The notes beneath the pieces were generated by a model. That model worked only from the letters and a program-made list of their open reading frames with translations, was not told where the DNA came from and made no database searches. DNA of 63,860 nt, filler included, from Klebsormidium nitens (lineage: Eukaryota; Plantae; Klebsormidiophyceae), in the NCBI GenBank assembly GCA_000708835.1. It is 5 parts of 5 records of this genome, joined end to end, with 100 filler letters (N's around TTAATTAATTAA, not from the genome) between each part and the next. Parts side by side here need not be neighbours in the genome. Positions count along the whole stretch, not along the records: positions 1 to 17,372 come from DF237965.1; 4 more parts are not named here. One strand, 5' to 3'. Of the stretch, positions 1 through 17,417 are shown in pieces. The stretch's first letter is position 1, and each line of letters opens with the position of its first letter. The position numbers and the translations under genes are program-made.

Positions 1-611
1 TTTCGTTTTCGAGTGCCCAGCTTATAGGTTCTTACGCACAGAGCGGTACATGGATTTGTTTGTTGGCCAGTCCGCATTTAGTCTGCGTCATTTTATAGGT
101 CAGGAGAACCAACAGAGGGTTGCTAGCTTTGTTAGAGAGGCGTTTAGGACTCGAGACTACATTCAGACCTTGTCTCATGAGCCACCCATGGCTCATACGG
201 GACTATAAAATAAATTGATTGATTGATTGATTGGCTGAGGTCATGGCTGTCACCGGAAAACGCGGTTAACGCAAATCGTACGACCTTTAGGTTGTACCGG
301 GTAGGGTACAAGGGCAGGACTTCCAATTTCCACCCGTACATTGACCGTACGGTTTCACTCTTGCATGATGCATCAATATCGGGGCTGAAGCCCTCAGTGC
401 TGCAAGTAGGACAAAGTACACTATTATATTAGTGTCTCCGGAAATTTCTTCAGTGTTATCACCCTCCCGTGCCGCGACCTTAAATGAGAAGCTGGCCGGT
501 AGGTACCACAAACCGGGCACTTGTTATCGCCGGCCGGGTAGCTGGACGACGGGCAAAGCTTCCAGTGTCAATCAGGTTCGAATCGTTTTAGCTACCTAAT
601 ACCGCTATCCG

Positions 612-836
612 GTGACTGTGACTGTAACTTTGAATTTATGATTGACACTGTGACTGTGGTTGAGACTGTGACTGCGACTGTGACTGGGACATTATTAAGT
701 TTTAATTGTGACCGTAAACTGTGGCGCTTCTAACCTGCCGGAAACCAATTGTGACTCAAACTGTGACTCTTGACACTGCAACTTTGATAGGTACCGACTA
801 GGTCCTAGACAGTGACTGTGACTGTGACTGTGACTT
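612..836 (+). repeat. GTGACT hexamer microsatellite-like patches
   Basis: Runs such as gtgactgtgactgtaact (612-629), gactgtgactgcgactgtgact (664-685) and gtgactgtgactgtgactgtgact (812-835), directly visible. Confidence 0.8.
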
Positions 837-2559
837 GAATGTAAAGGCAGTGACTCGGCAGTGTCACCGGGAAAGTTGAGAGGTCTCGGGGAAGTGGCTC
901 GGTACCATGCCGGTGCCCGGTCGAGGAGGACCGGAGTCCCGCATCCAAGAAAACAGATCATTCTGACACATGTCAGACCATCAACCAATGCCTGCACAGA
1001 TTGACGCCCTGTGAGAGTATTTACTCTGACAGATCGACTGGAGACACTAATATAGGTACAAGAAAAGTCAAAACTCTGTCGGGTTTAATCCTACCATGGC
1101 GTTTTGTCAGCGGCCGGTTGCCCCTCGGATAATATTGCCGGCTACGGTTTATAAGCCGGCCGGCTTTTAGTTTTAACGGGGGCTGGGCACAGCAAGTGTT
1201 TGCATGCATTTTCGATCTGCTGGCTGCATGAGCAGCCGCGGCCCCGGCGGGGTGCCTTCGGCACCGGCCGGAGGGCCTTCCCGGCCGGCCAGGTTTGCAC
1301 CAGGCTGCCGGGCCTACGTACGTACTGGATGTACCCGTAGAGACATTGGTACAGAAATACCGTACCGGTACCTACCCCGTTTTATGCCTTGTTCCTCGCG
1401 GAAAATCTGGGTAGATGTACGGTAATAAATATTCGCACCCACTTTAATACGGTATGATGTACGGTACGTAGATCTGACAAATATACCTAGTACAGCGACC
1501 TTTCAAGCATTGGTCTCCAGTGTCCACTTTCGACTCTGCACCAATGGCAATGGTTACAAACTGTCTTGAATTCCCCACCTAACCACTGTTTCAGTCCAGT
1601 CACAGCCAAGGTTTGTGCAAATGAGCTCCCACAGTCCCACTTTTGATCAACTCTGAGGAAGTCGAGCCAGTCGGGAGCCAGTCCTGCTTTAATACGGCCC
1701 GAGTCGCTGAAGTTGAAGGGCAACGGCAGAACGTATACGTAACCAGTGATCTACAATGCCCGGCGCTACAGTGGTTCCAGATTCATCAGTCCAGTGTGAC
1801 GACCGGCGGAGATCACGTTCGCAGGCGAGTACCTAGAAAGTGGTAGTAGTAGTGGTACAGTTTGGCGAGCTGCCGCGCCTACTCAACCTAGCTGGGCGTA
1901 AGTTTTGAGAACGCCGCACGGCCCTGCATGGTTGGTCGCGCGTGGCTTTGGCCAAGGAGGGCCCGCCCGCCCAGCTACCGTAATACCTCGCCAATTCATG
2001 AGATTCCTGTGTTCTGTATGTTCTGTGGCGCCCAGCAAAGTTTGGCCTGATCAGTGTCCTCGAATCTCAATAATTGCAAGGTCGAAGCAAGCAAAAGCAA
2101 CTGAGTTGTTGGCGTCCCTGGGCTTCAGTGAATGACTTTGGTCGTACCTAGCTAGGGTAGAGCCTGAGCGACCTTTCCACCACCCCTTGAGATTTTAATG
2201 TCGGCGTCGATTGGGAGAATACAATGCAAGGCTCGTTGTCACGGTGTCTGGAGAACTCATGAACTTTCAATGATGATGAAGCTAGGCCTCTATGTGATAG
2301 GCAGCCGAAAAATAGGATTCCTGCCCTCTTATCTCGGCATACCCAGGTTTAAATGAAGGCAATCTGCTGGGATCTCTTCATTTGCATACTTAGAAGTTAA
2401 CCTTGGTATTGAATCTCAGCAAGCTGTAAAGTCCTAAAAAAGCCTTTGGATCTGCCAACCTGCTAAATACAAAAAGTAGCCACGCTGTGGAGAGCACCTA
2501 GCAGCTGCCAAGCAGGGGGCTTCTATTGCTCAACTGGCACTGGGGCCCGTTTCCTGGAA

Positions 2560-5500
2560 ATGGGGACACCATACGCAACCAGTGCATGGTCAATCTGGCG
2601 TATGGCACTCCTCTTCAGCTCTGTGGGGTTAGCAGCTGCAATCTGCAACGAGTTTCCGTCAATCTACAACGAGCTTAGCTCCCAGGCAGTCGCAAGCTGC
2701 GACAGCACTGTCACCAATACTATACAGGTGAGACAGTCTTGTATAGAGCATACCATGAGAAGGTGTCAGTGAAAAACGGTTTCTTGAGCTGAGAGCCTGA
2801 GGACTTTCTTCGTAAGTAGTCCTGGAAAGTAGGTCTAGAACACGAGGCTTATGTCCGGATGAGATTGCACAGATGGTATGTGGTTGCTCCTCAAGGATTG
2901 CCTTTGCAAAGAAATTCCATGTGCGGGTCTTCTGGTGTTGTGCTTAGCCCTCCAACATTGTGGGTCTGCAAGCTGGTGGGTTGTCCTGATGGGTTGCCCA
3001 AAGAAGAGTTAGGGTGGTAACAACCTGTCTGGCATACTCACTCTCAGGAAAGCTTTCTGGAAGCTAGAAACTCATGGTAGCTAAGAGTACGTCAAGGAGG
3101 GTGTTACAAGTCGGGTGCTGCTATTAATGGAAGGCTTGGAGGTTTTCAAACAGTGTGGTTTTCCTTGTGTGGTTGCACAGCCTGGAGTCGTTAACTGCAT
3201 AGCTGACAAGGTGTAGACAATGTGGTCCTCCTCAAAGTGTCTGTTCACACACAGTCAAGGTGCTAGCCAAAATCTTACCTCTTGACTGGCCATCTCATGC
3301 AGGGGTACTTCCACAGCTCTGTTCTCAAGTACGGCATCGCTACTGTAACAAGCACCCAAGCATGCTGCCAGCGGTGCAGCCTTGACCCATTCTGCAGATA
3401 TTGGTCCATTGACACTGTAGCGGGGACGTGCATCCTATACGACATGACAGCATGCACTGCCTCCTCAAGCTTGTTCTACTCGTTCAACAAGAACAAATTT
3501 GTGACGGGTGTGGGGACCGGGACAGGCAAGCGCTACTCTGCGCTACTCTACTTCTGTTGATGAATGATCAGCATTGTGCTTACTTTGAAAATTGTGGGGT
3601 ACGCACGGGACATCCTCTCTGTATGACTTTAAGTTGCAGGGAGCGAGCAGCACTTAGACCGACCTTTTGATGGCCCTCTCCAAATTAATCCTGCTTGTGT
3701 CCATCTACTCATATCCTAAATTTAGCCTCTCCAAAATTGGCTGCGTTTACAGTCCTTCTTCTCCCTTGTTTGATAGCCAGCTTCTTGCTTTTTCAGGCGT
3801 AAGCGCAACCAAAGACCCGCACTTTGAGTTTCTCGTCCTCGATCGCACAATCAACGCAACCGTCAATTTCGGATTTGACTTCCATGGTGAAGCAGGACAG
3901 TCCTACTGCATGGTCACTGATTCCCGGCTACAGGTGAGGTATAAGCTATGTGAGGGTCAACGTGATTCGGCTTTGCTGACTTGCCACCAATGTTGCAACT
4001 GGAAGGCGCTGTCAGCTTCTGACAGGTGGACCCGTGCATCAATAGAAAGTCCATTGTCTGCTCACTGTACTGCTGCTTCGTTTTGACAGAGCAAGATGGA
4101 CAGGAGATCTCAAGAAGCCTGGTACTCATCACATCAGCTCTAATACTGTCACCGTCTTCATTTGCAGCTCAATGTTCGCATGTTCGGCCTCAGTCCGGAA
4201 GCAAAGATTATCAAGGATCTCAGCGCACAGCCAGACCCGGACCCATTCTTCCTGGGAACCTGGATGTACGCCCTTGAGATCATGTACCTGGATCAGTATG
4301 GAGAGCAGCAGGCTTTGAGTATTGTCCAAGTTGACACCAAGAAAGGAGCTGAGGACGCACTGCCGTTGCTCGTGAGCTCCCAAGGACACGTGCTTGATTT
4401 GGCAAAGGTAAGCAGGACGCCTTTCTTGCTATGGTACCTGGTCCTTCATTCCACGCTAAGAATGACGGGTTTTGTGATACTCATGGCTCATGATCAGATC
4501 GTTGCAAAGCTGACGGTTTTGTGTGAACTCCCACGCAAGATCAGATAGTATGCTGAAAATCTGAGAACTACAATGGGGCTATCAGTTTGCTCCGCAGGTT
4601 GTACACTGCAATTGCTGAATAGGGGTACAGCTCGAGCGCTCCTACTAAAGTTTGTGACAGACCATCAGGAACATCTGCGATGCTTTGGATGGGGTTCCAA
4701 AGACTAGTAGGTTCCAAAGACTAGTAGGTTCCTAAGACCTGAATCCACAGGGCAACTATCATTAATTTCGATCTATTTTAACATTTTTCGAATCCTTGCA
4801 GGCTCCGTGGACCAGCGATGACGGCCTAGCATCTGTTGCTTTAGCTAGCCACCAACACGGCAGCAAAGTGATCATCACAGTGGACGACCTGGTAAACCTC
4901 GAAGTGAAGGTGGATTACGAGACAGAGCTCATCGTCGAGCCACCCGTCCGTTTCCTCACTGTGAACCTCAGGAGCTTGTCAACGAGTACCGACGTCCATG
5001 GGGTAAGTTCCTTTTCCTCCACTCTGATCCAAGTCATCCTCTGCTCTTCTATCTGCTTGCGCATACTTCAAATTGCTTACTGCTTCAAAGTTGATGAGGG
5101 TTGAAAGATACAGGAGTGGAGACTGGCGGTGACGCCTAAACACGTTTCATCAGAGCTCAGGGAAGGTAACGAGGAGACAGAAAGTGCCGTCCGGCAACAA
5201 CTCACTCGAGGAACGTCAAGAGAAGCAACTCGAGAATCCGCAGTGACTCATGAGCTACTCATGAGCTCTGCAGAAGTTTGCTTTCCATGCTGCATGTGCT
5301 GATACGCGCTTGTCTGATTGGCATCATTCGTTGTAAGCTTTGCCAGCGCTTCGTCCGTTTTGGTTCCGGCGTCGTGACAGGGTCAGGCAAGAACACGAAC
5401 CGATGACAATGCTTATCTCAGGATTTATTGGCTGTTAAACATAGTTGCTTACGGGCTGGTTCAAAGCTGGTTGAATGTCCAATGACCAGACTAGAGCGGT

Positions 5501-6141
5501 AACCACGTTTTCAGCATGGCTATAACGTGGTTATTGGTCAAAGAACCACGTTAAATTCTGGTTATGAAACCTGGTTCGCAGCCAAACCTTCCTATGTATT
5601 GTGAGCTGTGCAGTTTTTGGGCCACATGTTCCGCCCCGGCGCAGTCGAAGAACGTCTGGCAATGGGCACGCTGGATTGCCTTGGCCATCGAGAGTATATC
5701 GAGGGGTTGGACCAAGACTACCAGACTACGAACCTCAGCACCTTCGACTGTTCGTTCAGCCGGTTTGGAAAGGTAAGCCACGACTCCGCTGGAAAGTGAC
5801 CCGGGACGTATTTTTAGTGGACGCTCAAGATGTAGTGAAGCTCGATCGCCAGGCTCCTTTCATTGCACACTCCTTGAACGGATGTTACATCAGGGTATGA
5901 CCACCACTGGTGCAGCTTTGAGTTCAGCTCTGGTTCGGCAGTATAATTCGTGAAATTACCTGTCCAACGTCAGTACCGCTCTGTGGGTTGGTGTGATCAA
6001 GGGTTCTGAGACTCAGCGGTCGCGAGCTCGTTGACCCTGATCGAATTGCGTCTTTGTTCTCCTCTGCAGATTGATATTGAATCTATCGCTGACGATGGAG
6101 TCGCGGTACTCGAAGCTGGCGGCCGTGGCATCAAGAGATGA
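2560..6141 (+). CDS. Secreted protein, ~399 aa: signal peptide + PAN/Apple-like Cys domain + Root_cap/VWD-like domain; 7 exons (2560-2727, 3303-3525, 3797-3933, 4168-4407, 4802-5002, 5614-5772, 6070-6141)
   Basis: All junctions are phase-consistent. Exon 2 has CCQRCSLDPFCRYWS..TCILY (PAN-like). Later exons read KDPH...FDFHGEAGQSYCMVTDSRLQLNVRMFG...GTWMYAL...STDVHG|FLGHMFRP...YQTTNLSTFDCSFSRF, which follows the plant Root_cap family pattern (FxFHG..F/YCxVSDxxLxINAxF; VHGVLGxTYRP; YxTxxLxxxDC). The intron 2 donor is probably GC (AG|GCAAGC at 3526). Confidence 0.75.
5428..5582. mobile_element. Intronic quasi-palindromic MITE-like element, copy 1 (AACC/GGTT-rich family)
   Basis: Ends GGCTG...CAGCC; alignable by eye to the copies at 21171 and 34889 (ttaaacatagttgcttacgggctggtt; ctggttatgaaacctggttcgcagcc). 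Confidence 0.5.
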
Positions 6142-7859
6142 AAGGCTTCTGGAAGTCTCAACAGACCTGCACGGTTCTCGTTCGAACCCCTGGCCAGTCA
6201 GTCTGGAGCGCCAGGGCACGGAAAATGGGTTTGTGTTGTATTGAATAAAATCAGAGGCGTAGTACATGTACTGGTATGGGTTTCCCAGAGTTTCTAGGGT
6301 CTTCAAGGAATAAGTGATCGCAGGTCACCTGACATGGTACTTCTGGATCCGCGATTGTTGACCTTGTAGCTTAAGCAGCTTGTACGTATGCTGATTGCAT
6401 GGCAGCAATATGATGGAGAACAGGACATGGTTATCGAGTCGGTCCCTTTGACAGCGTATAACAGCACCCTGCGCTTGCTGGTTGTACCAGAGGTTCGATC
6501 GATGAAGACAAACCTGGCAAACGTTGATCATGGAGCATTTTGGAGTAGACATCGCCCCTACAGATCGAACTTACCCGTATTGGGTACGGTACGGGCAGTC
6601 TTAAGTCCAAATGGAAGCCGTATGGAAATCCATGCTCATGCATTGATGTCGCATGAATTGATCGATGTCGCAAGGGACCCATGTTGAGTGGAATCAATAC
6701 ACAATCCATGCGGGATCGAGTCCATGCGGATGCCATCCCGGCGAACCGACGGTAGCTTATAAGATTCAGTACTAGCGGCTTATTGCAGGTTCGCCGGCGC
6801 AGCATGCTGACGTCATGCATTGCAACCAACTAGGTAATCACGTATGCAGAGCCCCATAGGAGTTCCGCCCACATATTGCAGACCACGCTCCGTCAAACGC
6901 TCCGTCAAACAATTATATCGACACGCACTTCTGAGACTTGAAGCGTCGGGATTTCTCAGTGCCAAAAGAGGCAACAACCTACAAGCTGTCCAGTAAACCT
7001 ACATCCGTCCGTGCAGTACCTGGCACCTGCCCTGTCAAACTAGTATCAACGAGCCGCTGAAACGTACACCTCGAATGCAGTGAATAGTTCGAGATCACCT
7101 CCAATTGGGTGCCCCGATCGGAAACAATCTCGGACGCATCGTTGTCAACTCTGCAAAGCAGCGCTCTAAGTAGCAGCGTCACGTCACGTCACTCCGGCTC
7201 GGCAGCTCCTTGCCGGCGCGGACAAGGCTCAGCTGCAAAAGCAACAGAGAAGCGAACGGACAGAATTAGCACTTTCCGCTTCGACGAGGAGAGCAAAGCC
7301 AAATTCTGCGGCCCTGTAATTGCGACTGGTTGAAGTCGCGCACTCGGTTGCGGTTCAAGCCAGTCGGACGGTGGGGATTGTTGAAAGCGATCCCAGGCTC
7401 GGCTCACCCGAGCACTTTCCTCACCTCCTCTTCGCTTGCGAAGGTGATTCAAGAAAAGCTTTTCTGTGACACTTACTCAGCGTTCCCGTCAACCAAAGCC
7501 GTAGGATTCAAAAGTCGGCTGTAAACTTGAATCAGCCAAAAGAGAAGCAGTGAATCACCCTACCCAGTAATGCTTTTCGCTCGACCGGCACATCCGACTC
7601 GAAGCGAGTTGCCTATTCAGAAGAGGTCGATCGCGGAAAACAGTGGTACATGCAAGAAGGGTCTTCAACGAATGAATGAAACACAGTCGTGCTCCAACCT
7701 GATCTCAGGAACTGTAGTTGTGACTTACCATGGACGATTTCGATCACTTCCCAGTATTGTAAACCCTTCACTCCAGCTGCGCGCGGCATCCGAAGCTGAC
7801 TAAAGAGCGTTACACAGGTTGCACAAAAGATCTCTTTCCAAATTCAAAGGCACGTACCT

Positions 7860-9110
7860 AAGCGTCTCCAGGAAGGACCCCGTCCTCCTCCGCCACCTCC
7901 CGGCACACGTCCTCGTCCGGCCCTTCGAAGCGGAAGGTTTGGATCAGCTTCTCGTTGCCGACTGGGGCCGGCTTCCACGGGGCACGACCTCAAACTTGTC
8001 GTTCGGCAGGTAGCCATCTAGATGCAGCTGCCAGATGTACCGGGCCGAGTCTTCGATCTTGTTGCGGTCCTGATGGAGCGTTCGTACTGCTGAGCGTCTT
8101 GTCCAAGAACCCGAGGTCGCCCTGAAAGGATGCGATTTGATGTCAGCATCAAGCCGGCAGGTAAGAGCAAAATCTCGTAGAATCGTTGAGAGAAAGAGAG
8201 ACCGGAGCCAATAATGGCCGGTCTGCTGTTGCACATGTACATCGTAATCTCGTTTTCCACTGAGCATCGATCGGCGACCTGCATAAATGTATGGTCAAGT
8301 TTGCAGGCTCGGCAGAGTTTCATTTCAGAATGTAAAACCTGGACAAGTGGGGAGAGCACGTCGACTTCTGTTTTTTATTGATGCAACATTCCTGGACGGA
8401 GAGCGGAAAAGGACCGTACGGAAAGCTTGAAAAGGATATCCAGATTGATCTTGAGAGAGAACATTGAAGCACATTGGGTACGTTCAAAAGTTGGTGTCGA
8501 ACGTTGCTGGCAGACCTGTAGGGCCTGGAGTGACCCAGACCACGCCGAAGTCTGCAAGAGAGTTTCGAGCTATCACAAGGCCAAACATGCACGGAAGTTG
8601 AGCAGCGGTGTGGATCAGGCTTTGCCGCAACCTACGTTTTGAGACTTTAAAAACCTTTTCTGAACTCGGTTCCAATTCAGCGGAGACAAATCAAATTCTT
8701 AAGTAGGAAAAAGGTACGGCCATGACAGCAAGGTCGGCAATCTGGTCTGGAAGCAGACTGTCAATCGGGTTGGAGAACAGTTCAGCCTTGAGCGGCGTGT
8801 ATCTAATAAATGGCGAATCCTACCCGTTCCTGGAAAGCATCTATCAAGAGTCTGAAATCAGGGCCTAAACCGTCCACACTCTGCCGTGTCCCCTACTGCT
8901 TTTACTTTTCCGGCTAATCTTTCAGCGAAGCTTGAAAACTCACCACGCGGGTGATGAACGCCAGGATGTCGGTCCAGACGCCGAGCGGCTCGGCGAGTTA
9001 AGCGTTCTTGCCGCTCATTGCAACAGCAACCGCCTTGTAGATGACGTCACCCTTGTAGTCGTTGGTCACGGAGTCGGAGTTTCCTTCGCCACGCAGCCAC
9101 GTTTTGCCTG
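7860..9110 (-). pseudogene. Degraded multi-exon coding remnants of unknown family, probably transposon-derived
   Basis: GC-rich exon-like blocks: DRNKIEDSARYIWQLHLDGYLPNDKFEVVP/frameshift/WKPAPVGNEKLIQTFRFEGPDEDVCREVAEEDG (7870-8072) and GEGNSDSVTNDYKGDVIYKAVAVAMSGKNA*LAEPLGVWTDILAFITRV (8945-9110), with an internal stop. Confidence 0.4.
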
Positions 9111-11854
9111 CAGAAGCCAAGAGCTTTCACCAGATTCATGTTGCCGACGACCATCGAACACATCAAGTTGGCACGTGCACGGGCTAGACCAGGAGATAGG
9201 TAAGCCGAAAGGCACTTCGAAGCTACGAACGGATTTGGTCTGATCACATACTTACATCAAGGTGACCAGACAAGAAGCTCATTGGGCCGGACGTTTACGT
9301 AGCCAGGTTTAGGTGCTTGATAGTCATGAAAACCCTCTCAAGCGCTTTTTGGATGGCAGCTTTCGGTTGAGTCTAGAGGCGTGCAGATTTAATCCATTCA
9401 GCGAACGACAAGAGACGGCTGTTAAAAATGCGGGTAGGCAGAGTTGTTTGCTGTATCCAGGTGACTGATCACAAAGCGAAAGAGATAAACTAACCGAACA
9501 GTACTGTGACTCAGGGAAAGGCTTTCAAGCACTTTTGCAAACTCACAGCGTCAGCTTATGAAGTGAGATTTTTGACGAAACGGGGGCAGGAGAGATGCTT
9601 GTCACGACTTACTTGCCACAAGCTCCGCAAGAGCTACGACTCTCGCCCGGACGTCGGCAAGGGAGGCTGTACTTGGAAAGGAGCTCTATGCTTGTCTCTT
9701 TCGCCTGCTGCATCGTCCTTGGCAGCAAAAGATTCACTATCCAAGTGCATATCAGCACGTCTGCCAATGCCAGTTCCCTTAGCCAACTTTTGCCAAACGG
9801 TTGCTTGGCTGCATATGCAGCCTTGAACAACTGCTTTGGAATGGGGCGCAGTCGTCCTTCTTTTTGCTGGCAGATAGTGGATCCATTTTCAGAGCTGGAG
9901 AGAAAGTTGGTTTGCTACAATGCTGTAACATGCTGCACCGCCTGTCAGCTCAAGGAGAAAATATGCAACACCATAAACAGAAAGAAGCAGACTACTGACC
10001 AGGTTTTGAGCTGACTGCTGCTTCTAAACAAGGAACGCCCCCCTCATTTGCTCATCAGACCTATTCTGCTGAAGGAGCGCTTCCAATGTTGCGGCATGGA
10101 AGCCTCAAAAGCTGATCAGCTAGAGAGGAGCCACGCTGACAATGCGAACGAGGATGACCCATCTTTGAAAAGTTAGCAACCTGAAGAATCTTGAGCACTG
10201 CGGAAAATCTGCTTCTGCTCTAAACTCCAAGTTAGATACATACCGTAATTGATAGATCTGCAAGTGAGTCTCCTTAGAACCGTTCTGGCATTGGCATTAG
10301 TTCTCGAATTTTCAGCACATGTTGAGCTCTTATGAACACAGCAGCCGTCAGAAGTACCGGCTTTGTAAGTTGCTCTCAACCATGTTTCCCGCTGATTTGG
10401 TCGCCGTTTCTGCCGTTTCCCTTCAAACAACAATTCGAATCTGGAGAATATATTGGATGAAGTGCATGTCCATGAACCTGCCTGAAAACTTGTCCTGAAT
10501 GGAGCAACATTTCAAATGACACAGCATCTCACCGTGCAATGCAGAGAGACGCAGGAGAGACGCCAACAATTCAAGCAGCCTTAGCAGGTACGGTTCTCAA
10601 TGCTCCGACTCAGAGTCATGGAAGAAGAAGCAGTGTGAACAACTCTTCACTTGGCACATAATTGTTTGGCAGCTTGTTGAAAATGGCAGCATCATGAGGT
10701 GCACCGGAACTATTTTTGGTTGGTTCCATTTGAATTAAGCATCACAGAAGCTGCCCCAAGATGACCCTCTCCTATTCTGACTGCGCAGCACCAGGCTTTG
10801 CAAACCGGCAAGCTCTGGGATCCCACCGAAGCAGCAAGTGCCCTGGCAAGCTCACTGGTGAATCCTTAACCCAACATAAGCGCAAGGCGTCCGCGCAGCA
10901 AAAGCTCGCTGGAGATCCAGCTTCTAGTGGTTAACGTGGACAATGTAGCGGACAAGCTTGCTAGGGTTGATCTGCCAAGAGATAGAGCCGCTCCTCCGAA
11001 AAATGCAGTTCATCTAGCAAGCTAGCCCCCAGAGAATTGACAATGCTGCAAAAGACTTCCATGATGACCCGGAGGTGATGTTGCAGATGACAATGCTGCC
11101 AACAATGTGCACCAGAGCTTTGCTGCCTTCGATATGTTCGCTGGCAAGCTCAACGTCCGGCTTGCCTGGTTGGAGCAGGTGGCGTCGCCTCTAGATCCCA
11201 ACTAGCATCCGCCAATCGCTTCCAAGTACGCGTCGCACTTATTAGCCGACCAAGAGAACGAGGTGCTGAGCTTGGCGTCCGTCCTGAGAAAGCAATTGGG
11301 GAAGGACTACGACAACATTGAGAAGGGCGTGGTGAGTGTGGCCGAAACCTGTTCGGATTCTTAGTCTGTGATTGCTTCTACCGGCTGAGTTTCAGATGCA
11401 ACATTTGCGCAGAGTTACTTGATTTGTCCTTCAGTGATGTGAGGCGTTCTATTTCCCCAAGTTACTTCCTGCCAGGGCCTGCATTGTGTTCTAAAGTTTC
11501 TGTCCATTGGATATACAAGTTACTTCCGGGAATTATATCTACTCAATCTGCCTCTGTTTTTGAAGGCGCCGCGTTTGCTGGAAGATGTCACAATCTTGAC
11601 TGTGACTGCACTTCACCGTAAAGCTTCCTTTCTCAGTAGATTGAGGTAGAGTTCTGGCTCGTACCATTAGAGGTTCAATTGGCTAGACTCTGCCGTTTCT
11701 TTGTGACGTAGCTTTCAGGAAAGAGTGATTGAATTTCCCACTGAAAACTGTACAAGGCAAACTTTCATGTTGCACTGCGCAACTCGCTCGCGCTTATAAC
11801 TCTCGCCCTATATTAACACTTTCCTGGACTTCTCTCCGACAACCTTGTGATCAG

Positions 11855-12276
11855 GTGACTGTACAGACAGCGCTCGGCCTGCCCGTCGGCGACAGCGACC
11901 CCTTCGGCAGCTGGCCGATGTACGCGCGCGCAACCACGGATCTCCACAACCGCCCGTGGTTCGACAACGTGGTGCTGCAAGGGGAGGGTCCGGACCAATC
12001 GCCGGTTGACCTGTACGCCCGGGTGCGGATGTTCCTCAGTTTCTGGCTCGTGGAAACGGTGACGAGGGCCCGGACGTGCAGCGAGGTGGCGCTCGTGCGC
12101 TACTACATGGAGTTGGGCAGTTGTGACGTCACCAAGTGCAAGCAGCTGCGGTGGGACAGGAGAGCGTGGTCAAGCTGGTGGACACCGCCGACATCCTCCG
12201 AGCGGTGCACATCGTCCCCAAAATCGACAGGAAGGGCACCTACGACCTGAAATGGATTCTCTTCCACTACTCCTAG
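11855..12276 (+). pseudogene. Frameshifted C-terminal exon of a Plavaka/CACTA-related transposase-like protein
   Basis: ARATTDLHNRPWFDNV...LYARVRMF...VALVRYY...LRWD/frameshift/LVDTADILRAVHIVP resembles the C-terminal pattern of Plavaka-like transposases, recognised from memory only. More decayed exon-like blocks lie at 9600-11330. Confidence 0.45.
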
Positions 12277-14662
12277 GGCGACTTGTCAGGTTAGTCGGAG
12301 GGCCGCTACTTTCCGTCTAGTGCGCAGCCTTGAAAGATTCTTCGTAGATGAGTTACTTGGCTCTTCTGAGTGCACCTGAAACGTCGATGTTGTTCAGTGC
12401 GGCGGAGGGTAAAAGCAGCCGACTAACATAATCGCGTCAACCGTAGAAGACAGTCGAGCACGGCCGTGCAAAGCTGAAGCTTTGATTGATGTGATTCCAA
12501 GTGCGATGCAGCTTTCTCACATTGCCCGTACTGAGACGGTTTCTCCTTTGTGACAGTAAATCTATTACTTGTGGGCGTTGGATCTTTGCCCAGGATTCTC
12601 AAGTCTGTGATGCGGGAAAACGCTCGTTGGATCTGTCTCAATGTTTGGGTAGCCCTTCATGTTTGCTGAAGAGTTGTGCCTTTCGAGGATCAAGTCCGTT
12701 ATGGTTCCATTTGATTTGAGCCAATGTTTTGGATTGTGCCAAGGCTAAAGGCGTTCAAGCTGCCCTGGTCGCACGAAGGGTCCTCATCCCCAAGACTGTG
12801 TTTGCAGGGCGGTCGGCAATGACGTCTGATCAGATCTCTCGAATCTGGTGCCAATCTCGCTCGTTCAAACGTCTCAGACCGAATTCTTTTGTTTGTGAGT
12901 CTTTCATTCTCAGGAAAGCTTTAGATTTAAAGTTTTGGCTTCTTAAGGCCCCCAAGTCAAGCGCCTTGTACCAATTCGTACTCATCCGGCCTTAGGTCTG
13001 GCAGAGCCGTCCGCCGGGTCGACTTCTTCCGCAACCAACAAGCTGCGGGTCAATGCCAACAAGCTGGGACGAGCGCAGACGGAGAGGGGCGTCCCTAAGG
13101 GTGCCACGCTGAACTGCGCCGCTGCAAGGTCAAGGTACGGAGCTGCTGCAACGACATCCCTTTCTGTTGATAGACTGAGGAGGCTCCGCGTCTTAGCCCA
13201 AAGAAACGAAAGCAATGCCCTGGTACAGTTTGTAGATTCTTCCAGAAATTCTTCGAGGGTCCGTTGATTCTGTGCGGCTTTTCAAGCCTGGCAGGTTGTC
13301 GGGTCGTCTGACGGTGTTACGCAATCCAGTTGAGAACTGTTGCTGAATTCGAGAAGCCCATCTTAGGTTGATCGAGACTTCTTCGACTGAAGACCCTTGT
13401 CACTGATTTGCGATGCAACTTCGATGTCGCTGTTCAGAAGCGGACTCTTTTAGGTCTGTAAGTTGGAGGCCGACTCAAGCTGCATTTGCTTCTATCAAAT
13501 ACAGCCCCGACCACTGGACCCTGCTCAATTTTCCGACTTGCCCGAGGCTGTCGCTTCATTGATGCTTGAAACTCAAGAACCTTTTCATCCGTTGCAGGTC
13601 CCGTGTTGTATCTGAGCATGTTGAAGTCTGCAATGCGCATTGCAGCGCTGCCGCGCCCTGCCGTCCATTACTAGTCACCAACAGCCTGACGGGCTTTAGC
13701 TGCCAATAGTTGTACAATTCCGTCGGTCAACGTTGTTTAATAGAAATTCGTGTTGTAGTACACTCGAGACACGGTTGTTACTGTATTGCACCGTGTTCAT
13801 CACATACGTTGTAGTATAGAGGCCTATCTGAAAAATTAGTAGCCTGCACAGTTGTCACGTTTTCTTGTCTGCCGAAGACAAAGTTACATGGCGTATAAGT
13901 TCAGCAGCAACGATGATGGATCTTGTCCGGTCACTCATGGTGTGCACGAGATGCAATGACTGCCAGATTGCATGTTAGTGGCACGCAGATTGTCATGCAA
14001 GCAGATTGCCTTTTCATATGCCAGCGCGGCAATCTCGAAACTTTCAATGACGTTGGTGCCACTGCTGCCTCCGTATGGATTCCAAATGGATCCATTGGCA
14101 TATATGGCGCCTATGATGGATTAACCACATGGCAACCGCCGTCGCTTCCATATGGGATTCAACGCGTCCATCCACATAGAATCATATGCATATCGGTCCA
14201 TCTTATATGACAGTACCAGATGGAGCCTAGCCGAAGGCTTGGAATCCAATGCATGATGCGGGGCCTACACATACGGATTCCACACGGCAGCCACGTGGGC
14301 AGCCACGTACGTCGAACCTAAGCTCAATGCGGTAGCCTCTCACAAGGATCTCGCATGGTTCGGCCATACGGGCCACGCCCCATGGGGGGGCAGGTTTGTG
14401 AAATTCGTGCTCGAACATAAGGTCACTGGGTGACATGCATCAGGCTGAGAGGCTGTTAAAACGGCAACTCCATAAATTCCGCTTTTGTCACGGTCTTGCT
14501 AACTTATCATTAAACTTGAAAGGGCCGTGGATTCGCTTTCTTGACTGTGTAAGTAGCAACCGACCAGATTTTTGCTTGACGTACCCAAACATACACTCCA
14601 AGATAACCAACAAAAACGTAGTGATCTACGACAATGTGTACCTGGGCTCCGAAATCGGCTGG

Positions 14663-15971
14663 CTAATTCCGAGCTGGAAAGAGCCCCGAAACAGCTATTA
14701 TGCAATTCAGGACGAGGGTGGGCTGCTCGTTTTCATGTGCTTGCTCGGCCCCTGTTGCATCTGTGAAGATACTTGTGGGCGACTCGGCAACAAAAACAGT
14801 GCCGTCATAGGGTATGTCAGGCTGGCCACTCGTTGAAAACGAGCCTCCCTTCGACACTGTAACTCTGTGCTGGTGGCTTGCCATTTCTGCTGACGTCAGT
14901 GTGTGGGCGTACGCTCCTCCCGACTCTCCCAGGCGATGAGAGGGTCCTGTCGATACAAAAAATATGGCCTCTGCTCTCGCACAAGATCAAGTCTGCAACC
15001 AAGTCCAGATCACTAATTGCTTACATACATCATACCAGGATGCCAGGATGTGCCTAGATCAATCACACTGTCCTATCCATGTTGACCCACTTAACAGAAA
15101 GTCAGGGCATGGAGATTTGCTCACCAGAGTGCAATATGGTCCTGCTCCGAATATCAGGAAGAGCGAAGTTGGTGCGGCCATCCCCTCCGTATCTGCACGT
15201 TTTCCAGATCAAGTGTTCTTCTGCTTTCGTACATGACTGCTCTTATCATCCAGTCCTCTAGATCAAGAACCTGACAGAGGACAGCAAGAACTGTCTGCTG
15301 ATGGTTTCCTGCCTGTAAGTAGACACCGGCCGGGCAGGCCAGTCGACCCAAACAGCAGAGCCCCAGAAAACACGAAGCGATCGAGGGTGCTGCAAGGGAA
15401 CGAGTCTGAAGCTGAGATGCATATGCATTGGCGGAGACTCACAAGCGAGGTGACAGGACAATGCAGAGGAGTTGAGCTAACGGAGTGGAATTACTCACGT
15501 GGTTCCAAGGAGGGCAAAGAGAGCAAAATTCGAGTTGATTGGAAGTAAAGCCCCATCACAACGCGCCCAACCTGTGGGTATAGTGTTGAAGGCTGTCCAC
15601 GAAATGGAGCCAGTGAAAGGGGCTGCACATCAACCACCACTTGCCTTTAGTCATGAATCGCAGAATCTGACTGATAGCATAGTCAAGGCACTGCTGATCA
15701 AGACCGAATCCTGCTTGAATTCACCCATGTCTTAGGCAGCAGCTAGCGATTCTCCAGAAGAAACATCCCTTTTGACGGTCCTTGGAGCTGCAAGAATGCC
15801 GAGCAATCTTAGTGCGGCACCTCGTGGGGACAGCTGCAACAAACCCAGCTCCAAAATCAGAGAGCAGTCGAGCTTAAGTCGAGGCCGAACAGAGTTACTG
15901 AGGGGGGATGAGATTTCACTGCAATAAAATCCTCCCAGTAGAAGCAATGTCGCCAGTGCTAGAAGAATCAT
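14663..15971 (-). CDS. Spliced, probably secreted homologue of the bacterial phage tail-collar / microcystin-dependent protein (MdpB-like); exons 15971-15899 (first exon tentative), 15622-15499, 15192-15125, 14946-14663
   Basis: Phase-consistent GT-AG splicing gives PFTGSISWTAFNTIPTGWARCDGALLPINSNFALFALLGT|TYGGDGRTNFALPDIRSRTILHS|GPSHRLGESGGAYAHTLTSAEMASHQH...TGAEQAHENEQPTLVLNCIIAVSGLFPARN*. This matches the Tail-collar domain (GW..CDG.LLPI....ALF.LLGTTYGGDG...FALPD.R) and the HxNxQPxLxLNxIIAxxGxFPxR C-terminus. Confidence 0.88.
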
Positions 15972-17417
15972 AGATTCTCTTCTATGATTTTGAATGCTCG
16001 ACCATCCTGCTAACATTGTGCCCGTGGGGATTAGAAAGGGCGGTGATTAGATAAAGAATAAACAAATGCCGTCGATTCCAATGGACAAGTGAATATCTGA
16101 ACTTGAACTCTTTCTTGCTGACGGTTAATTCTGTCGAAAGGAAACAAGAAGCGACAACGTCCTGAACTTGGGTAGACTTTTTGCCCGGGTCCAATCCTCA
16201 CTTGCCCTGACGGTCTGCGGTATGCACCCGAGCGCCAGCACCAGACCGAATGCCAAGAGGAGAAATCTTCGATCCGACACAGCCTTGACTGGGCCATGTC
16301 TATAGGGGTCGATGCCAGTCAAAGCCGCCATTGCCACTTCTTCTTCAGGGAGCATGCAGCTCAAAACCAGGAATAGTCTTCTATTCTCTCCTCGAGACCG
16401 GACACCCTATGTGCTGTATTAGCCAGGATGTTTAGTCTACGTTTGAGCCCCTGCCCGAGTTTTAATTGACCAGCTGCCGCAGGTCCACGTCAGATAGAAC
16501 TGCGCGCAGCGTTCTCTAGCACTAGCCAAGACAGCAGCATCAATAATGACAATACGATTGAGATTTAGCTGAGCTTTCTCAAAAGGAAGTTGGTACCCTT
16601 GCAGCAGAAAGCGGCCCCAAGTATAGCATGAAGAACCTGCAGCTAGCAGCCAGTTGGCGTAGGGCGGAGAGTGTTCGGAGGTGAGAACCTGTTCGCTCAG
16701 CTGGGCGGCCTGGGTACAGGGTCTAGGCCTGTGTCTCCAGCAGGCGCCCGGGCTCACTCAGACTTGTCTTGTGCGCGTCGGCATGCGGCGGCCGGCCTCA
16801 GATTCAGAACAGGTACGGTATTCAGAAATCTAGGTATATTAACTTTAAGGTTCACTACTGTCAGACCTGACAGGTCACCCGTGACTCAGCTCACTCTTGC
16901 GCCCAAGAATGTCGGTAGGTAGGTACGGTACTAGGTAGGTACTACCAGGTTCCAACGACTCTACACTGTACAGTGTACATACGGTATTATACGGTACATA
17001 GGTACCTACTACCTCTACTGTTGTAAAAATGGTAGTGTACACAGTCTGGTAATTTCTACCGTACCAACCGGGAACTCTACTGCGCCAGGCTAGCAGTGTG
17101 TCCTATTTTAATACCGGTAAAAGTTATGTACGGCTCAGTGTACTTAATAGTACCGTAGTGGAGAGTCACCGTACTGGAGACCGTACTACGTCGGTCGCCG
17201 CGAAAGTCACTGAGTGACGACACTGCGGGCAAACCCGCTTACATTTTTTCGTTTTCCAATTCCCAGGGCCGTACATATAGTCAGACGTCCGTACGGTTTG
17301 ATTTTCTGCAGCGATGTCGACACCCAGACGGTACCTACCTATTTGCGAATTTCCCGTACGTACAGGCTACAGNNNNNNNNNNNNNNNNNNNNNNNNNNNN
17401 NNNNNNNNNNNNNNNNT

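Follow-up and report, generated by a model that had tools for sequence, protein, structure and literature searches.

The window analysed here, a 63,860-nt stretch of DNA from Klebsormidium nitens (assembly GCA_000708835.1) made up of five parts, holds in its first part (positions 1-17,372, from DF237965.1; all coordinates are those of the whole stretch) what is, with a probability of roughly 0.78, a nuclear Klebsormidium gene, eukaryotised and bearing a leader, that derives from a stand-alone bacterial tail-collar gene (MdpB-like, COG4675, "tail fiber protein"; ~170 aa). Klebsormidium is a freshwater and soil streptophyte green alga of the class Klebsormidiophyceae, related to land plants. The bacterial reading frame is complete, from its "PF" to its final GxFPxRN, with two spliceosomal introns within it, and a third intron (intron 1) links this bacterial-type frame to a new 5' exon. 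The transfer of a gene from bacterium to alga is clear, and its kind is not unprecedented. After the transfer, the gene would have gained its introns and its 5' exon, and the hydrophobic leader encoded by that exon would direct the product to the secretory pathway.

Three-frame translation of the reverse complement yields four in-phase coding exons on the minus strand and three canonical GT..AG introns, all with GTGAG...AG ends (579, 306 and 178 nt). Exon 1 (16331..16202; 43 codons plus one base, starting at ATG 16331, with an alternative in-frame ATG at 16355) encodes the leader and is followed by intron 1 (16201..15623; phase 1, CAA/GTGAGG ... TGCAG, the slash marking the splice site). Exon 2 (15622..15499) carries the first part of the Collar domain (PF..GW..CDG..LL.I..N.ALF.LLGT), intron 2 (15498..15193; phase 2, CAC/GTGAGT ... 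TGCAG) falls within that domain, and exon 3 (15192..15125) carries its second part (YGGDGRTNFALPD.R.R). Beyond intron 3 (15124..14947; phase 1, CTG/GTGAGC ... GACAG) lies exon 4 (14946..14663), with LGxxGG, an HxH motif, a variable "head" stretch, QAHxNxQP and a C-terminal strand running to GLFPARN, closed by the TAG at 14665-14663. The HxH motif is His-Gln-His (14875..14867, minus strand), and both of its histidines are invariant in two alignments. Exons 1, 2 and 3 end in phases 1, 2 and 1, and the ~198 whole codons contain neither stops nor frameshifts. The precursor of ~201 aa consists of the hydrophobic leader and a complete MdpB-like/phage-tail-collar module of ~157 aa. A sequence-only reading of this DNA had placed a spliced protein of ~160 aa with in-phase exons at 14663-16313; the module has that size and the stop at 14663 was exact, but the 5' end was 18 nt off, the ATG being at 16331 and not 16313.

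How much freedom was there in placing these boundaries? An in-frame stop codon (15631-15629) lies three codons upstream of exon 2, and the AG at 15624-15623 is the sole AG between this stop and the first conserved codon; at the other end, the last codon of exon 2 is directly followed by TGA, and the donor is the GT that overlaps it. Because in-frame stop codons force both, neither the acceptor nor the donor of exon 2 was freely chosen, and since exon 2 has no Met, there must be a coding exon upstream of it. The codon split by intron 2 (AC/A, Thr) restores the consensus LLGTTYGGDG, and that split by intron 3 (G/GA) encodes Gly, the residue that 93% of bacterial homologues have in this column. 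The exon 1 donor at 16201 (CAA/GTGAGG) matches the GTGAG donors of the other two introns, and we infer that exon 1, with ATG 16331, is the first exon. The three introns share no similarity with one another, with the remainder of the 17.4-kb part or with the two K. nitens repeat loci described below, and an introner-like origin was rejected on these grounds. A 133-aa ATG open reading frame (ORF) at 14435-14836 (plus strand) runs antisense to exon 4 and is taken as a by-product of the opposite coding strand.

Each exon was searched separately. Against Pfam Collar (PF07484; 57 positions, gathering score 24 bits), exon 2 matches profile positions 1-37 (E 1.6e-11, 44.5 bits) and exon 3 positions 39-57 (E 1.6e-6, 28.4 bits), each alone above the cutoff; the profile position missing between them is the codon split by intron 2. 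Exon 4 gives a weak match to Pfam Gp10_C (E 0.018) and matches tail protein in PHROGs (E 2.6e-10). In BLASTP searches against a 170-aa bacterial homologue (P0096), exon 2 aligns with residues 4-43, exon 3 with residues 45-65 and exon 4, from its residue 3, with residues 70-170. Exons 2-4 are thus collinear with the bacterial protein and show no gap, the missing residues 44 and 67 being the split codons, which the DNA reads as Thr and Gly, the consensus residues. Identity to bacterial modules is 50-65% for exon 2, 57-82% for exon 3 and 31-47% for exon 4. These matches, together with profile matches to tail fibres (below), uphold the assignment to the tail-collar/MdpB family made from the sequence, for which the search against PF07484 had been proposed as a check.

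The ends of the module are equally well defined. Exon 2 starts at the conserved "PF" that trails the start codon of the bacterial genes, and exon 4 stops at the same residue as the bacterial proteins, its end (..PTLVLNCIIAVSGLFPARN) aligning column for column with their C-termini; the GxFPxRN terminus that had been expected reads GLFPARN. The features of the stand-alone MdpB-like (COG4675) subfamily are all present, namely a single module of ~170 aa, LGxxGG, HxH, QAHxNxQP and the terminal GxFPxRN, in place of which the phage-fibre subtype ends in ..LNYIIK. (NCBIfam has no model for a tail-collar MdpB-like family.) The C-terminal strand of exon 4 is presumably the distant third strand (conserved ..L.LN.II....G), ~100 residues downstream, that completes the collar fold in the Pfam family and the gp12 structures.

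Conservation was assessed in an alignment of 72 bacterial single-module proteins to which each exon was added as a separate fragment, that of exon 1 being force-aligned and ignored. All 16 invariant columns are kept in the algal protein, HxH and the C-terminal GxFPxRN included, as are 36 of the 45 columns conserved at ≥90%. The retention of every invariant residue in a frame of ~198 intact codons argues for function, as far as this can be read from sequence. Could the gene nevertheless be a silent relic, transferred and then interrupted by intron-like insertions, and now unexpressed or no longer functional? It adjoins a large repeat region, no identical or near-identical protein is on record, it is unannotated in the protein sets searched, and no partner genes are known for it, in contrast to the triplets found in bacteria (below). 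A relic is unlikely, however: the invariant residues have been kept despite ~55-60% divergence in exon 4, the uninterrupted codons are joined by three GTGAG..AG introns in just the phases needed, and insertions that were merely intron-like would not restore the consensus at each junction.

The relatives of the gene point to bacteria. A HMMER search with exon 4 against 1.84 billion representative proteins (E<=1e-3) returned 1284 matches (best E 8e-22, identity 31-52%), of which the best 150 were inspected and ten were looked up for their source. There was no near-identical protein among the 1.84 billion representatives, and an exact look-up of the 73-aa exon 4 ORF found no record; since the K. 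nitens proteome was included in the collection searched, the gene, or at least a form of it with exon 4, appears to have escaped annotation. Scans for close relatives with exon 4 returned none from IMG/VR or the JGI metagenomes, and a word-index search with the exon 4 ORF gave no match either, a result that says little given the length filter and the divergence of the sequence. Among the ten top matches looked up, the only entries from named organisms were Paenibacillus "tail fiber protein" sequences; the rest came from metagenomes or assemblies, and those with names were two "microcystin-dependent protein" entries and one PEP-CTERM repeat protein. Bacterial genomes, taken one per species, hold at least 554 relatives, the best 80 of which are 31-47% identical and come from more than 12 phyla, mostly soil and freshwater lineages. 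The nearest Atlas language-model clusters are 99-100% Bacteria. All relatives of checkable origin are bacterial or, more weakly, viral, in keeping with the earlier description of the family as one of bacteria and phages.

No eukaryotic source was found among the ten top matches looked up, two short matches that were traced or the nearest Atlas clusters. The short matches deserve comment. HMMER matches of ~100 aa that start at the exon 4 boundary were considered as possible last exons of eukaryotic genes and rejected, since the two that were traced come from contigs of bacteria: one, next to a Collar ORF, is the second half of a gene that overlapping calls have divided, and the other is near a contig end. 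On a wood metagenome contig (L002, 136-1052), a DUF6916 gene is immediately followed by a collar gene that has been annotated as two overlapping ORFs (one of 55 aa with Collar, the next of 100 aa), and the ~100-aa "proteins" of the collar family in databases are therefore fragments. An old eukaryotic family inherited vertically, rather than by transfer, is most improbable. With the best 150 of 1284 matches inspected and ten looked up, eukaryotic members may exist further down, but the algal module matches the bacterial single-module architecture from end to end, neither the top matches checked nor the nearest Atlas clusters pointed to a eukaryotic source, and no report of collar-domain genes in eukaryotes was found in the literature, part of the results being swamped by unrelated terms.

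Might the gene have come from a virus and not directly from a bacterium, the source being an algal giant virus or virophage, or else a phage of an associated bacterium? The domain is, after all, a phage tail-fibre module, and relatives occur on 12 IMG/VR contigs, one of them a giant-virus metagenome-assembled genome (38% identity over residues 8-83, without the terminal motif), and among actinophage minor tail proteins (E 3e-7). These matches are, however, fewer than the bacterial ones (12 versus at least 554) and weaker (best E 4e-12 versus 2e-16, E-values that are relative to each scan's candidates and so not strictly comparable). The giant-virus match and most of those from isolated phages end before GxFPxRN, like the ..LNYIIK type of fibre, whereas the algal protein has the full architecture and length of the bacterial stand-alone form, and no viral genes were found near the collar gene. 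A viral source is thus decidedly unlikely, and the donor was probably a bacterium, judging from these comparisons.

The setting of the gene is that of its host. The 17.4-kb part that contains it is gene-poor, with a GC content of ~50%, and no second collar copy was found there. A repeat of ~6.5 kb (7826-14401) shares collinear blocks, 67-84% identical at the DNA level, with two K. nitens loci (L083, L084) and has the same GC (0.50); on the same piece of sequence, it ends ~260 bp from the TAG of the collar gene. Within this repeat, a 173-aa ORF resembling those of transposable elements (11729-12247, plus strand) is 74-75% identical to the K. nitens hypothetical proteins KFL_000720010 and KFL_008630045; its nearest Atlas clusters in a protein-language-model search are fungal and DUF6830/KDZ-transposon-like, with a low recognition score. 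The repeat is probably an unclassified family of DNA transposons of Klebsormidium. The collar exons are absent from the two K. nitens copies compared, and the collar gene is therefore not cargo of the element.

Bacterial-type genes in eukaryote assemblies are often contaminants, and a chimeric assembly, or bacterial contamination joined to algal DNA, has to be considered for this reason. It is extremely unlikely here. Bacterial genes do not have in-phase GT..AG introns inside a domain, the GC content of the exons (0.52-0.585; GC3 0.556) and of the introns (0.45-0.52) fits that of the host (~0.50), no bacterial sequence exceeds 52% identity, and a Klebsormidium-type repeat stands next to the gene. 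The host-type flanks and the in-domain introns together therefore exclude simple bacterial contamination, as had been proposed from the introns, and the 67-84% identity of the adjacent repeat to K. nitens loci bears out the placement of the gene in Klebsormidium or a very close relative of it.

How does the algal gene compare with its bacterial counterparts? Of 77 bacterial homologues, 71 are single modules (157-201 aa), and most start with M-S/A-E-P-F and have no leader. The stand-alone proteins, which NCBI names "tail fiber protein" or "phage tail collar domain-containing protein" (Paenibacillus WP_238167765/WP_308423096, second module; Deinococcus ficus WP_027462299), consist of the same module from "PF" to GxFPxRN, are 165-172 aa long as against ~157 aa for the algal module, and share with it HxH, QAHxNxQP and all invariant residues. 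The bacterial genes have no introns and mostly no leader, whereas the algal gene has three introns and an added 5' exon. They also occur in tandem triplets (two loci seen), often beside a GNAT gene, or as two or three fused modules, whereas the algal gene is single in its 17.4-kb part. The triplets, on pDFI2 of D. ficus (L097, 4788-6335) and pY5S7-1 of Paenibacillus amylolyticus (L098, 4248-5839), are paralogues of ~170 aa next to a GNAT N-acetyltransferase gene, and the annotation within 5 kb of either lists no gene of a phage or an injection system. Bacterial triplets without phage neighbours hint at hetero-trimers and at a cellular, non-virion role for this little-studied family. Many of the top matches (P0001, P0003, P0005, P0006, P0015) fuse two or three complete collar modules, and such a single chain might supply all three subunits of a pseudo-trimer. 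(Some of the bacterial relatives have a signal peptide or a PEP-CTERM anchor, as in P0002.)

Other bacterial genes have been acquired by streptophyte algae or the ancestor of land plants, among them those for a DNA-3-methyladenine glycosylase (PMC5570899) and a Tm-1-like protein (PMC5028733). Both were likewise fixed in the streptophyte nucleus and given introns, but they encode enzymes or regulators that land plants have too, whereas the algal collar protein is a structural or binding module of phage-tail type, so far found only in Klebsormidium sequence. The low identity of exon 4 to bacterial genomes (31-47%), the three introns gained and the host-like GC and GC3 suggest an old and settled transfer rather than a recent one.

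The leader encoded by exon 1 has a basic RR, a hydrophobic core of 13 residues (maximum Kyte-Doolittle 9-residue window 3.04) and a small-residue V-R-A directly before the first collar residue, and exon 1 has no Pfam match. Its product is likely to be a signal peptide or a signal anchor. The sequence-only reading had called a signal peptide; the elements of one are present, but the long n-region and a second candidate first exon, both taken up below, qualify that call. Whichever first exon is used, a hydrophobic leader is predicted to begin the product, and most of the bacterial relatives have none.

What would such a protein do if it is secreted? The closest solved relative of the family, both by profile (E 3.2e-13) and by Foldseek (E 2e-4, first hit), is the tail fibre of cyanophage A-1(L) (8KEC), a 379-aa virion fibre in which the likeness is limited to the collar/HxH part and the C-terminal strand. 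The short tail fibre gp12 of T4 is more remote, at E 2-3e-3 against the bacterial family profile (1ocy, 5iv5, 1pdi) and third by Foldseek (1ocy, E 1.5e-3). Its receptor-binding domain (1OCY, 1H6W/5LYE, 5IV5) aligns with the family in the collar motif and in HxH, which matches the H-K-H of gp12 in the profile comparison, at a sequence likeness of E ~2e-3. However, gp12, with 527 aa, belongs to the virion baseplate and has a larger head domain and a long N-terminal shaft, whereas the algal protein has no shaft. In T4 gp12 (1OCY), the HKH histidines hold a zinc ion on the trimer axis, and the HxH of the family would be the same metal site. The AlphaFold model used for Foldseek is that of a bacterial homologue, built with 72 sequences (a 13-sequence model was too poor, pLDDT 52); it has a pLDDT of 78-92 in the collar part, 79 in the C-terminal strand and 51-63 in the middle.

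By analogy with gp12 and other tail-fibre tips, the mature protein of ~157 aa would form an intertwined trimer, with the collar strands and the C-terminal strand packed against each other and a metal ion bound by the HxH histidines along the three-fold axis. The variable stretch of ~45 residues between HxH and QAHxNxQP would then be an exposed binding surface that probably binds a surface glycan, carried either by bacteria or by the wall of the alga itself. The algal protein may thus be secreted and trimeric and may bind a metal ion and a glycan, and the trimeric adhesin or surface/defence protein suggested in the sequence-only reading is a candidate role. A further step, that the alga has turned the receptor-binding module of a phage tail fibre into a secreted trimeric lectin for bacterial surface polysaccharides, with a role in pattern recognition or adhesion, is tentative and rather unlikely.

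Several points weigh against descent from a bacterial collar gene that acquired introns and a leader. The splice junctions and the first exon are predictions made from the DNA. The n-region of the leader is long (21-29 aa), so that a signal anchor is possible rather than a cleaved signal peptide. Within intron 1 there is a second in-phase candidate first exon (16016..15899, minus strand; ATG 16016 or 15971), which encodes a hydrophobic stretch and has GT sites in phase 1 at 15919 and 15898; this candidate is disfavoured, its donors (GCA/GTGAAA and TCA/GTAACT) being weaker matches to the gene's own GTGAG donors. The structural model, itself built for a homologue from bacteria, reaches good confidence only over the collar part. 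The bacterial tandem triplets suggest possible hetero-trimers, and there is only one copy in the 17.4-kb algal part. No orthologue from another alga was found that would allow purifying selection to be gauged. Finally, trees were built from exon 4 only (93 aa), and a careful search with 126 rows gave no supported sister group for the algal sequence. A quick tree of 81 rows had grouped it, as a long branch, with Paenibacillus (three sequences, SH-aLRT 97); Paenibacillus as the donor was rejected when this grouping was lost in the denser tree. The collar family is itself scattered across bacterial phyla.

Some other features lie elsewhere in the 17.4-kb part, where Rfam found nothing. A plus-strand multi-exon gene (2467-5104) combines a possible leader exon (~2467-2769, M-A-L-L-F-S-S-V-G-L-A-A-A) with a PAN/Apple exon (3267-3557, plus strand; PAN_1, E 1.4e-5), followed by open stretches at 3658-4083, 4144-4545 and 4766-5101 (plus strand) that match no family, one of which has no word-index relatives. 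A hexanucleotide microsatellite, (GTGACT)n with ~13 copies, lies at 612-690, and a 17-nt tandem repeat (2.7 copies) at 4693-4738.

Bacterial genes transferred into streptophyte algae have been considered as raw material for the transition to land. Enzymes make up most of the documented cases, and the cargo in this case, a structural binding module of phage-tail type, is unusual. The collar module was taken up in its entirety, acquired introns and was apparently directed to the cell surface, and it is present in no protein set searched. It illustrates cleanly how a prokaryotic gene can become eukaryotic: a leader exon has been joined on two residues from the former start codon, and two introns have been placed within a domain of 57 residues. 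It also indicates that the annotation of genomes of the Klebsormidium type misses short multi-exon genes of foreign origin. By analogy with tail-fibre tips, the product is a candidate algal surface protein that binds glycans. If the reading as a secreted lectin were true, a phage-derived protein would be shaping the dealings of the alga with its bacterial community, in the lineage leading to land plants.

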